64,000 bases of DNA from IMGVR_UViG_3300035661_000001:186001-250000; one strand, 5' to 3'; positions 18,473 to 57,427 are shown, counted from the first letter of the stretch. Made by a program: numbers and translations. Notes: generated from the sequence alone by a model not told the origin.

Positions 18473-19252
18473 ATGTCATATTCTAAACTCAGCGATAGAA
18501 TCGGAAGTTACTCTACTTCAACCGATTATAAAATATTAAATAGATTACCACTCATTATTACAGTTAATGGCAGGGGGTTCTCTAAATCTACATCTTTATT
18601 AGACAAACCTTTTTGTTCTAAATTTTCAGAATGCATGACATCGACTATGTTAAAAATGTGCTCTGAGATAGAAGGTACTTTATTTTCTTATTCATTTAAT
18701 GATGAAATTGTTATTGTTGCTCGTAATGATCAGCATCAAGATACAGCGGCTTGGTATGATAATAAATTACAAAAGATTTGTTCGGTCAGCGCAAGCATAG
18801 CTACTGAAAATTTTAATCGTATGGGTTCAGAATTGAATTTGTTAGGACATGGTATATTTTACTCTCATATATTTCCAGTGCCAACTTTAGCTGAAGCTAT
18901 AAATACATTAGTATTTAAACAACAACAAAATTTCTATTTATCAATTCAATCAGCCTGTCTTTACGAATTGTTAAAACATTACAATAAAAATACTATTAAA
19001 GAAATGTTAAATGATCTTAGTGTTGATGAAAAAATAGATTTATTACGACAGGAGTGTGATGTTAATTTCAATGACTATCCCATCGCTTTCCGACGTGGGG
19101 TAGCTACATACAAAGTACCTAAAGTCGTAAATGATGTTATGAAGAATAAATGGATTATAAATAGTGATCTTCCAATTTTCACTAAAGATCAATCATTTCT
19201 TGGAAACATTTTTAGAAACGGCGCGGATATTTTTAGAACCGATAGTTTTTAA
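18473..19252 (+). CDS. tRNA-His guanylyltransferase-like (Thg1/TLP) protein
   Basis: ITVNGRGFSK, FNDEI, WYDNKLQKICSVSAS, FRRG; first catalytic Asp appears as Asn. Confidence 0.8.
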   Translation: MSYSKLSDRIGSYSTSTDYKILNRLPLIITVNGRGFSKSTSLLDKPFCSKFSECMTSTMLKMCSEIEGTLFSYSFNDEIVIVARNDQHQDTAAWYDNKLQKICSVSASIATENFNRMGSELNLLGHGIFYSHIFPVPTLAEAINTLVFKQQQNFYLSIQSACLYELLKHYNKNTIKEMLNDLSVDEKIDLLRQECDVNFNDYPIAFRRGVATYKVPKVVNDVMKNKWIINSDLPIFTKDQSFLGNIFRNGADIFRTDSF

Positions 19253-19454: not shown

Positions 19455-19528
19455 GCTAGTTTAGTATAATGGTATTATTCCTGTTTTGTACTCAGGTGAC
19501 AAGAGTTCGATTCTCTTAACTAGCTCCA
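19455..19528 (+). tRNA. tRNA-Thr(UGU)
   Basis: GCTAGTT/AACTAGC acceptor stem, anticodon loop TT-TGT-AC, T arm AAGAG-TTCGATT-CTCTT, encoded CCA. Confidence 0.85.
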
Positions 19529-19629
19529 AAATATTCTTTCAGTACATATAAGTACTTGTAGCGGAACCTAAGAATATTTTATGCTGCTTTAAGGGGACTG
19601 ATATGATTCAGTCCCAAATTTATTATAAT

Positions 19630-19983
19630 GGGCTTGAAATAGATTCGACTCTGTATGATACGTTAGTGTGCAAGTGCCAAATGATTATCACTGGCTTAAA
19701 AATATAGTCAACGTATAGCTGCAAACGACAATGCAACTGCTCCTTACGCTCTAGCAGCTTGAGGATGTTCTTTAGATAAGGTATCTTTAGTAATCAAAAG
19801 AGCATTAACCCACCAAAGATAGCACCACATTGCTCAACGGATAATGGTTGCGAAATAAACAGAGATAGCTTATTGGGCGAATCCAATAAAATGTCGTTAA
19901 CTACATTAAAATTAACTAAACTTGTAAACGAATAGTAACCTTGATTATGGAACACCCCGGGGCGGTACCGGGCAGGTCCACAA
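19630..19983 (+). ncRNA. ssrA: tmRNA, one-piece; tag (A)ANDNATAPYALAA* at 19721-19762
   Basis: 5' GGGCTTG..GATTCGAC pairs with 3' CAGGTCC; T arm CCCGG-GGCGGTA-CCGGG; resume codon GCA; tag ends ALAA; full CCA not encoded. Confidence 0.92.
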
Positions 19984-23478: not shown

Positions 23479-23900
23479 AATGTCCGACTTGCTTATCTAT
23501 TATGAAATGTATTTCTGCTATAAATCCTGTTCCAGGTCAACCTGGAAAAGATCGCATGGACCTACATTGTTATAACAGAGAGGATCCAAAATCACCTAAT
23601 ATGTGTAGAGCAAGAGCACATATGGGTGTAATAACGGAAGATCCTAAAGAATGGGTATGTCATGAATATAATCTTTCATTTAAACATAATGAAAATTTAT
23701 TTTATTTAATTGGTTATGATAAATTAGTGGATCCTTATTTTCAGAGAAGACCTGTCGAGGAAAGCTATACTATTTTATCTGATGTTTTTGGAAGAGAAAT
23801 GGTAAAAGTAAATTTTGTTCCAATTTCGACTGGTGATGATATGCATGAACGGGCATATGATTTGTTTCATAGCCTACCGGATCAGGCACCAATTTCCTAA
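23475..23900 (+). CDS. Hypothetical protein; last 10 codons derive from a tRNA remnant
   Basis: CPTC N-terminus; stop TAA lies in the anticodon loop of the tRNA-Arg relic. Confidence 0.6.
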   Translation: MKCPTCLSIMKCISAINPVPGQPGKDRMDLHCYNREDPKSPNMCRARAHMGVITEDPKEWVCHEYNLSFKHNENLFYLIGYDKLVDPYFQRRPVEESYTILSDVFGREMVKVNFVPISTGDDMHERAYDLFHSLPDQAPIS

Positions 23901-23935
23901 ATTGTTTTAAATAGGTTCGATTCCTATTAGGGATA
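23870..23935 (+). pseudogene. tRNA-Arg(CCU) remnant lacking the 5' acceptor strand
   Basis: D arm GCCT/AGGC, anticodon arm CAAT-TTCCTAA-ATTG, T arm ATAGG-TTCGATT-CCTAT, 3' strand TAGGGAT with no matching 5' strand. Confidence 0.75.
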
Positions 23936-56176: not shown

Positions 56177-57427
56177 ATGGAAATAGAGATTAAAGAATTA
56201 GAGTCCTGTAAACTTAACATTGTTTATGTAGCTGATGCGGGTGAGATTTTAGAAAAGCGTGGCGTTGTTATTCAAGCTTTTAAGAAAGCTCCAGTTCCAG
56301 GTTTCAGACCAGGAAAAGGATCAATTGATGCTATTAAATTTCATTATAAAAATCAAATTGAAGAGTCATTAAAACGTGGTTTGGCAGAAGACGCTTATCA
56401 TAACACTCTTTTTGAAAAGAAATTAAAGCCACACGGAGCACCGACTTTCAAAAGCCTTCTTATGGGAGATGGTAAATTCACTTGTGAATTTGATTTATTC
56501 GTAAAACCAGATTTTGAACTAGCTGATTTTAAGAGTTTAAATATCCCAAAACCACATGAAGATATAAGTATCTTAGAATTTTCAGAAAAGCTTTTACAAG
56601 ATTTAAGACACAAATTCGGAGAGACTGCTCCTTATACGGAAAATGATTTTGTACAACAGGGAGATAATGTAATTATAGATTATGTTGGAACTGTTGATGG
56701 AACAAGAGTTGATTCTTTGTGTACCGAAGGTGAAATGTTAACTGTTGGTCAAAGTCAACTGCCTAATTTTGATTCAAGCTTATTGGGCATGACGTTGTCA
56801 GAAACTAGAGAATTCGATTTAGTTGTTCCTGAAAATGGAATGCCATCTTTAGCTGGTAAAACAGTTCATTTTAATGTGACATTGAATATGGGTTCAAAAA
56901 CTGAATTATGTCCATTAGATGATTCATTAGCTGAAAAAATGGGAAAGAAAACTATTCTAGAATTAAGAGAATTAGTTAATGCTGCGGCAAGCGGTAGAGT
57001 GTCTAATATGCTTAAATTGAAAATAAATGAATCAGTTGCTGCTCATTTAGTTAACGATAATTCTTTCGAAGTTCCTAATTGGTTAAGTTTATCAGAAGCT
57101 CAATATTTAGCACACAGTGCTAAATTAGATTGGGTAACTATGAGTGAGTCGGATAAAGAAAAATATCTAGAAATGGCAATTAGAAATGTTAAATTGTCAT
57201 TGGTATTAGATAAAATTAGAGAAACAGAACCAGAAGCCCAATTATCAGATCAAGAAGTATTCAACATAATTAAAGGTAATTTAGTTAAAACACAAAATAG
57301 TAAAGAATCAGTAGATGATATTATTAAAGAGATGAATAGGACCGGCTATTTACAAATAATGTTTTCTAGAATCAAAGACGAATATACGCTAGATTTTGTA
57401 TCGAAAAAAATCAATATCATTGAGTAA
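56177..57427 (+). CDS. tig: Trigger factor
   Basis: Ribosome-binding PGFRPGK, FKBP domain (GD.VIIDYVG...G), C-terminal domain; GAGG SD. Confidence 0.92.
   Translation: MEIEIKELESCKLNIVYVADAGEILEKRGVVIQAFKKAPVPGFRPGKGSIDAIKFHYKNQIEESLKRGLAEDAYHNTLFEKKLKPHGAPTFKSLLMGDGKFTCEFDLFVKPDFELADFKSLNIPKPHEDISILEFSEKLLQDLRHKFGETAPYTENDFVQQGDNVIIDYVGTVDGTRVDSLCTEGEMLTVGQSQLPNFDSSLLGMTLSETREFDLVVPENGMPSLAGKTVHFNVTLNMGSKTELCPLDDSLAEKMGKKTILELRELVNAAASGRVSNMLKLKINESVAAHLVNDNSFEVPNWLSLSEAQYLAHSAKLDWVTMSESDKEKYLEMAIRNVKLSLVLDKIRETEPEAQLSDQEVFNIIKGNLVKTQNSKESVDDIIKEMNRTGYLQIMFSRIKDEYTLDFVSKKINIIE

Follow-up and report, generated by a model that had tools for sequence, protein, structure and literature searches.

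A one-piece tmRNA gene with an alphaproteobacterial-type T loop in an uncultured huge phage

The genome of an uncultured 452-kb phage carries a one-piece tmRNA gene whose T loop, GGCGGUA, has the form typical of alphaproteobacteria. This gene is very probably a functional ssrA of standard topology and a member of an orthologous family that sits at a fixed locus on at least 14 huge-phage contigs. The original prediction had read the loop and the tag as possible signs of a re-joined or pre-permutation alphaproteobacterial lineage kept in a phage, and as a clue to the host. Its description of the gene, one piece with a T loop of alphaproteobacterial form, has stood; the alphaproteobacterial ancestry and the host clue have not. 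At least six other phyla, and other phage contigs too, have one-piece tmRNAs with GGCRGUA loops, and the genes closest to this one are its one-piece orthologues in phages, half of which have canonical UUCGAYU loops.

Results

A standard-order tmRNA gene downstream of a tRNA

The stretch of DNA analysed here (the window) is 64 kb long and comprises bases 186001–250000 of a 451,956-bp IMG/VR virus record. The phage genome has direct terminal repeats, approximately 30% G+C and 41 tRNAs as called by ARAGORN; tRNA-Arg(UCU) is present twice in each terminal repeat (phage genome 42–243 and 451744–451945). The features of interest are as follows, in window coordinates except for the last.

18473–19252, plus strand: gene for a Thg1-like tRNA(His) guanylyltransferase (PF04446, E = 7.9e-17)
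19455–19528, plus strand: tRNA-Thr (UGU), a complete, separate gene (ARAGORN; RF00005, 60.4 bits)
19630–19983, plus strand: one-piece, standard-order tmRNA gene of 354 nt (full-length RF00023 match)
19630–19636, plus strand: 5' acceptor strand GGGCUUG, pairing with 19973–19979 and including G3:U70
19637–19649, plus strand: D-loop analogue AAAUAGAUUCGAC, in which position 19641 is A instead of the G of canonical tmRNAs
19721–19762, plus strand: tag reading frame, with resume codon GCA at 19721, ANDNATAPYALAA at 19721–19759 and TGA at 19760–19762
19956–19972, plus strand: T arm, with CCCGG at 19956–19960, the 7-nt loop GGCGGUA at 19961–19967 and CCGGG at 19968–19972
19973–19979, plus strand: 3' acceptor strand CAGGUCC, pairing with the 5' strand
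19980–19983, plus strand: discriminator A, then CAA in place of CCA, so that the gene ends in ACAA
19986–20030, plus strand: strong intrinsic terminator, a 16-pair stem followed by a T run, starting three bases past the tmRNA
56177–57427, plus strand: trigger-factor homologue with Trigger_N, FKBP_C and Trigger_C domains
268418–268810 of the phage genome, outside the window: gene for a PolyA_pol-family (CCA-adding type) nucleotidyltransferase (PF01743, 51.1 bits)

The match to RF00023 covers exactly 19630–19983 and model positions 1–374 (51.6 bits, gathering score 47; E = 2e-17). The gene runs from the 5' acceptor strand through the tag frame and the pseudoknot region to the T arm, which our script places 329 nt downstream of the 5' strand, and on to the 3' acceptor strand. 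The unpermuted order that had been proposed is therefore confirmed both by the sequence and by the full-length match, and the T arm, the tag with its TGA stop and the incompletely encoded CCA could likewise be read from the sequence as originally described. The acceptor stem has seven base pairs, among them G3:U70, the alanine identity pair, and is followed by a discriminator A. The tag frame begins with an alanine resume codon (GCA, gene position 92; ARAGORN puts that of the relatives at 92–95), has a hydrophobic end in AA and closes with TGA. The canonical T loop UUCRANY, a feature that is not universal in the RF00023 family, is absent, and the D-loop analogue reads AGAUUCGAC, as in one-piece genes outside the alphaproteobacteria. 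Every helix pair forms with the exception of the closing pair of helix 2a, which is C:A in this gene alone. The gene is a real, standard one-piece tmRNA with an unusual T loop.

The Thg1-like gene is the conserved upstream neighbour and defines the syntenic locus of the tmRNA. The tRNA-Thr gene lies 101 nt upstream of the tmRNA gene, and the two are probably co-transcribed. A terminator consensus scan returned two terminator-like sites against 0.5 expected from shuffled sequence. Trigger factor is a ribosome-associated chaperone, and the presence of a Thg1-like tRNA repair enzyme and of tRNAs next to the tmRNA, with the trigger-factor homologue farther along, fits a role in maintaining translation during infection. 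Protein Atlas matches of the phage trigger factor are scattered over Campylobacterota, Actinomycetota, Chlorobiota, Bacteroidota and Planctomycetota and so gave no useful pointer to the host. No SmpB gene was found in the phage genome. The nucleotidyltransferase could supply the CCA that the tmRNA and tRNA genes leave unencoded.

Two further tRNA-like sequences were noted. A borderline match at 23864–23935 of the window (plus strand; RF00005, 29.8 bits, gathering score 29) overlaps two ORF ends and is not called by ARAGORN. Outside the window, at 80119–80195 of the phage genome, lies a tRNA with anticodon CUA, an amber suppressor that ARAGORN labels Pyl. Genome-wide recoding of TAG was considered and rejected: the gain from reading TAG as sense was smaller than that of the TGA-sense and TAA-sense controls, and stop-to-stop ORFs cover 89% of the phage genome under code 11.

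The stretch with the tmRNA was found in three to four metagenomic DNA runs, from microbial mat and sediment, and a second IMG/VR contig, L249, carries an identical copy of the tmRNA; the gene is therefore not an assembly accident. The sequencing-run search for this stretch returned DNA runs only (microbial mat, sediment, rock and freshwater) and no RNA run.

The gene belongs to an orthologous family of huge-phage tmRNAs

Thg1-like homologues were found on 14 contigs, with 61–100% identity, and 12 of the contigs are 138–481 kb long. In all 14 cases the homologue is accompanied by a tRNA cluster and then a full-length one-piece RF00023 tmRNA, scoring 51.6–151.9 bits. The 452-kb phage itself comes from samples of microbial mat, sediment and freshwater. 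Among GenBank phages no cultured relative was found: tblastn with the Thg1-like protein gave at most 32% identity, and blastn of the locus against 50,697 GenBank phages matched the tRNA only.

The 14 contigs hold 12 distinct tmRNAs, the window gene and 11 others, which align over their whole length with a mean column identity of 71% and all encode ANDN...AA tags. In this alignment 94.3% of cells form pairs, against 38–43% when the 3' partners are slid by one to three columns, and compensatory changes occur in 47 of 69 pairs, against 13–18 in the slid controls; since the consensus structure was derived from the very alignment on which the pairs were counted, the contrast with the controls is inflated. 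None of 500 shuffles reached the observed pairing values. All 12 members have G1-C, G2-C and G3:U in the acceptor stem, and pairs 4–7 covary. Pairing and covariation together indicate a family under selection as tmRNA. The nearest relative, L250, is 78% identical to the window gene, has the same elbow and carries an intact ANDNASAPLALAA tag; its T stem, CGUGG/CCACG, differs from that of the window gene by two double-compensatory changes. The unencoded CCA is shared with L258, a member with a canonical T loop that also ends in ACAA.

The T loop differs between members of the family. Six have UUCGAYU, four have GGCRGUR (the window gene, L250, L254 and L255), and four contigs (L256, L257, L259 and L261), contributing two distinct sequences to the alignment, have a 6-nt UGCAAU loop. 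In a maximum-likelihood tree of the clade built without the elbow columns, the non-canonical loops fall at two separate positions, so that at least two loop changes are needed, and the AU test rejects uniting them in a single clade (p = 0.0011). The window gene is thus an orthologue of canonical one-piece phage tmRNAs, and its elbow has changed. Because the loop type changes within the clade, the T loop is at best a weak clue to the host, and the use that the original prediction made of it falls away.

D loop and T loop change together

In tRNA the elbow is held by the contacts G18:psi55 and G19:C56. In every set of tmRNAs that we examined, AG in the D-loop analogue goes with T loops of the G55 type and GG goes with UUC loops. 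Within the phage clade, six members combine GG with UUC and five combine AG with [GU]GC (L255 was left unparsed). The same association holds in Myxococcota (25 GG+UUC and one AG+GGC in a sample of 26), in Saccharimonadia (22 AG+[UG]GC) and in alphaproteobacteria, where a GGC-type loop accompanies YAG in 27 of 27 parsed genes. By analogy with the tRNA contacts, we infer that the first one would be re-specified as A with G55, the G:C56 contact being kept. TrmA and TruB modify U54 and U55; loops of the GGCGGUA type have neither of these residues.

The elbow with G54/G55 and A appears to have arisen, or to have been transferred, repeatedly in one-piece tmRNAs, at least twice within the phage clade. 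The elbow therefore carries no information on permutation history.

The sharpest case is the pair formed by L254 (5331–5682) and L256 (5796–6146). Outside the T arm these genes are identical at 315 of 335 positions (94%), and inside it at 8 of 17, the arms being CAGGG-GGCAGUA-CCCUG in L254 and UCGGC-UGCAAU-GCCGA, with its 6-nt loop, in L256. The contrast suggests that the T arm was replaced as a block. One explanation would be recombination, with the tRNA-like domain or the T arm imported from another tmRNA, for instance that of the host. Such an import agrees with our main explanation on what the gene does and departs from it on where the loop came from and on how far the loop can point to the host; were it correct, the loop type would report the type of the host's tmRNA, SmpB or modification enzymes. 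Block replacement between genes that are 94% identical elsewhere speaks in its favour, as do the two or more switches in the clade and the coordinated change of the D-loop analogue, which implies that both halves must match. Group I introns are moreover known to favour the T loop of tmRNA, and genomic islands often integrate at the tmRNA gene (PMC11915505). Against it, no donor sequence was found; L254 and L256 share their 5' half, so that in this pair only the T arm changed; and in a 17-nt hairpin point mutation followed by compensatory selection is a possible alternative. On balance, we consider an imported elbow possible but rather unlikely.

A broader and equally tentative reading, to which we would give about one chance in a handful, is that the elbow is a swappable module that huge phages change or exchange as a block. 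If so, the exchange could serve to match host factors that read the elbow (SmpB, modification by TrmA and TruB, or a defence nuclease), or to become independent of them. Loop type would in that case follow the biology of the host instead of ancestry, and would point to a new form of phage–host co-adaptation in trans-translation.

The low model score probably does not reflect decay

The window gene scores only 4.6 bits over the RF00023 threshold, at 51.6 bits, whereas its canonical-loop relatives reach 100–152 bits. This difference, together with the C:A closing pair of helix 2a, the failure of ARAGORN to call the gene and the precedent of mycobacteriophage DS6A (PMC4131195), could be taken to mean that the gene is decaying or does not tag. 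We hold this to be very unlikely. The tag frame is intact and ends in ALAA, its resume codon is at the conserved position, and all helices pair save for that one cell. L250 keeps the same elbow and an intact tag at 78% identity, with two double-compensatory changes in its T stem. The same loop is the sole form of tmRNA in five bacterial genomes checked, and a missing CCA is common in bacterial genes.

The loop is not confined to alphaproteobacteria or to permuted genes

The original prediction rested on general features of alphaproteobacterial tmRNAs, and these proved accurate. We assembled an even, unbiased sample of 31 alphaproteobacterial genomes, all with an RF01849 tmRNA (alphaproteobacterial genes score 123–313 bits), of which our script parsed 27 genes. 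Each of the 27 is a permuted gene with a GGC-type T loop, exactly GGCRGUA in 23 and a close variant in four, and all ARAGORN-called tags of permuted genes in alphaproteobacterial records start with ANDN. The D-loop analogue is YAGG(A/C)UCGAC in 26 of the 27; the window gene has UAGAUUCGAC and is of the UUCGAC type seen in one-piece genes, not of the alphaproteobacterial AUCGAC type. Blastn of the window gene against 30 alphaproteobacterial tmRNAs found similarity only in the 28 nt of the T arm and acceptor strand and in 24 nt of the tag region. No complementary 5' strand was found downstream of the window gene, so the circularly permuted order is absent.

We scanned IMG/VR for the T-arm pattern and obtained more than 120 matches, of which the 120 listed were classified. 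Among the matches listed, 119 of 120 have perfect 5-bp T stems and about 105 belong to permuted genes, in which the CCA precedes the 5' acceptor strand by 30–300 nt; the permuted tmRNAs of viral contigs L048 and L049 have a T arm and a 3' acceptor strand identical to those of the window gene. At least six of the matches listed are one-piece genes (L009, L017, L075, L093, L108 and L111), with the 5' strand 334–411 nt upstream, and several of these contigs are 64–278 kb long. On rechecking with Infernal, the one-piece gene of L017 fell below the Rfam gathering score. On three further viral contigs, L027, L046 and L058, a GGCAGUA T arm lies 46–63 nt downstream of a complementary 5' acceptor strand; by analogy with mycobacteriophage DS6A, these could be genes of tRNA size that encode nothing but the tRNA-like domain.

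We also scanned 185,579 species genomes with a pattern demanding one-piece spacing and obtained at least 120 matches, of which 120 were listed. Of the matches listed, at least 66 come from permuted alphaproteobacterial genes that happen to have a TTCGAC upstream, and at least 44, defined by script rules on acceptor and T-stem pairing, are genuine one-piece GGCAGUA tmRNAs from non-alphaproteobacterial records. By the labels that the records carry, the latter comprise, among the matches listed, about 20 from Thermoleophilia or other Actinomycetota, seven from Myxococcales or 'delta', six from Gemmatimonadaceae, five from Saccharibacteria/TM7, one each from Vicinamibacterales, Omnitrophota and Vermiphilus, and three resembling Omnitrophota or Vermiphilus; Dependentiae are also among the groups with a one-piece GGCRGUA tmRNA. 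The Infernal recheck covered five genomes and the viral loci L075 and L249–L262, and in the five bacterial genomes the GGCAGUA gene was the sole full-length RF00023 match, at 95–143 bits. One-piece genes with a GGC loop in Myxococcales and Gemmatimonadaceae also have tags of the ANDN type (ANDNSFALAA and ANDNLALAA, for example), and ANDN tags are found in canonical-loop Myxococcota too.

GGCRGUA is a scattered minority form within each non-alphaproteobacterial group, being found in about two of 301 genomes of the first phylum sampled, three of 51 of the Thermoleophilia-type class, one of 51 Gemmatimonadota and six of 51 Saccharimonadia. In Saccharimonadia, 23 of 25 parsed tmRNAs have [U/G]GC loops and none of the 25 has a canonical T loop. 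An encoded CCA is absent from 12 of 26 sampled Myxococcota tmRNA genes, and an unencoded CCA is ordinary in bacterial tmRNA genes. Within the one-piece set, the best blastn similarity to the window gene was in TM7/Saccharibacteria, over the 3' 70–80 nt only and at about 70% identity; being short, AT-biased and of the same elbow type, this similarity was rejected as a clue to a donor or host. A full-text literature search returned nothing relevant on these loop motifs in tmRNA. A MAG labelled Sinobacteraceae (gammaproteobacterial; L144) has what looks like a permuted tmRNA, with 30 nt from the CCA to the 5' strand and a D-loop analogue of the UUCGAC type.

These surveys bear directly on the ancestry first proposed, in which the phage kept or re-fused an alphaproteobacterial gene and would have an alphaproteobacterium as its host. 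The original prediction had itself said that GGCRGUA loops proving common in one-piece tmRNAs of other phyla or phages would count against it, and by that standard the ancestry is refuted. In its favour are the GGCGGUA loop and the ANDN tag, both near-universal in alphaproteobacteria, the T arm and 3' acceptor strand shared with the permuted genes of L048 and L049, and the precedent set by Jakoba libera, whose mitochondrial tmRNA has been re-permuted (cited in PMC11915505). On the other side, the same combination of loop and tag occurs in one-piece Myxococcales and Gemmatimonadaceae, sister phages carry orthologues with canonical loops, and the window gene lacks the AGG(A/C)UCGAC form of the D-loop analogue. 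With the loop present in at least six non-alphaproteobacterial groups and changing among close relatives, the window gene is not a relic of a two-piece alphaproteobacterial gene, and we regard such a lineage as extremely improbable.

Detection tools miscall genes of this kind

The two checks proposed at the outset, ARAGORN and the comparison of Rfam models, gave results that need to be read with the behaviour of the tools in mind. ARAGORN called no tmRNA in the window or in the whole phage genome, and at the locus reported tRNA-Thr only. Version 1.2.41 detected none of 52 one-piece GGC-loop sequences checked, and did find permuted genes, most canonical genes and UGC-loop genes. The miss is explained by this blindness to one-piece GGC-loop genes and is not evidence of absence.

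As to the Rfam models, RF00023 matched over its threshold, whereas RF01849 (alpha_tmRNA) gave a partial match of 16.5 bits on the phage genome (gathering score 50), a result that weighs against an alphaproteobacterial lineage. RF04321 (tmRNA_permuted) reached 40.8 bits (gathering score 47) at window 19468–19762. We rejected this match as a chimera: it joins the tRNA-Thr T arm to the 5' half of the tmRNA, and the two acceptor strands are not complementary. On L254 (5233–5453) a corresponding chimera of the upstream tRNA and the one-piece tmRNA scores 60.4 bits, above the gathering score of 47. With a tRNA upstream of a one-piece tmRNA, RF04321 can thus report a permuted gene that does not exist, a pitfall for annotation. 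Given the blind spot of ARAGORN and the chimeras of RF04321, surveys of phages and MAGs that rely on them miscount tmRNAs.

Discussion

The explanation that we favour is that of a working phage ssrA with a changed elbow, and by extension from established tmRNA biology its expression, ends, charging and tagging would follow the usual course. The RNA would be transcribed with tRNA-Thr or just after it, its 5' end would be trimmed by RNase P, and its 3' end would be trimmed and then completed with CCA by a CCA-adding enzyme, for which the PolyA_pol-family protein of the phage is a candidate. The AlaRS of the host would charge it with alanine by way of G3:U70. As the phage encodes no SmpB, we propose that the tmRNA binds the SmpB of the host; it would then enter stalled ribosomes and add ANDNATAPYALAA, the YALAA end of which would serve as a protease degron.

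Phage-encoded tmRNAs and non-canonical tmRNA T loops are both already in the databases, and the biological significance of the find is modest. Its practical consequence is that a GGCRGUA loop does not mark a tmRNA as permuted or alphaproteobacterial in ancestry and, taken alone, is unfit for inferring phage hosts or the history of tmRNA. The repeated, coordinated switching of D loop and T loop in a clade of huge phages amounts to a natural experiment on how the elbow is read.

Among known systems, the two-piece tmRNA of alphaproteobacteria (RF01849/RF04321) shares with the window gene the GGCRGUA T loop, the A in the D-loop analogue and the ANDN tag. It differs in that the window gene is unpermuted, has AGAUUCGAC where the alphaproteobacterial D-loop analogue has AGGAUCGAC, and has no blastn similarity to it beyond the T arm and the tag. 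The re-permuted mitochondrial tmRNA of Jakoba libera (cited in PMC11915505) is a one-piece gene with features of a permuted lineage. Its ancestry, however, lies within mitochondria, where tmRNA genes are usually permuted, whereas the sister genes of the window gene are canonical one-piece tmRNAs, and for that reason no re-permutation needs to be invoked here.

Closer in form are the one-piece tmRNAs with a G55 loop in Saccharimonadia, some Thermoleophilia, Myxococcales, Gemmatimonadaceae and MAGs of Dependentiae and Omnitrophota. In these the gene order is standard, YAG accompanies a [G/U]GC T loop, and UUCGAC stands in place of AUCGAC; like the window gene they often have no encoded CCA, and in Myxococcales and Gemmatimonadaceae the ANDN tag is shared as well. 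They differ from it in being GC-rich or in having other tags.

Standard tmRNAs encoded by phages are known from the mycobacteriophage Bxz1 group, Bacillus phage G and the huge phages of Al-Shayeb et al. 2020 (PMC4131195, PMC7162821, PMC11915505). ARAGORN, which misses the window gene, was the tool of the huge-phage survey. Like these tmRNAs, ours is a one-piece ssrA on a large phage, set among tRNA and translation genes, and in this phage it has no partner SmpB in the genome. It differs from them in belonging to an uncultured clade without a GenBank phage relative (Thg1-like protein at most 32% identical, DNA match to the tRNA only), and in combining a GGCGGUA T loop with AG in the D-loop analogue.
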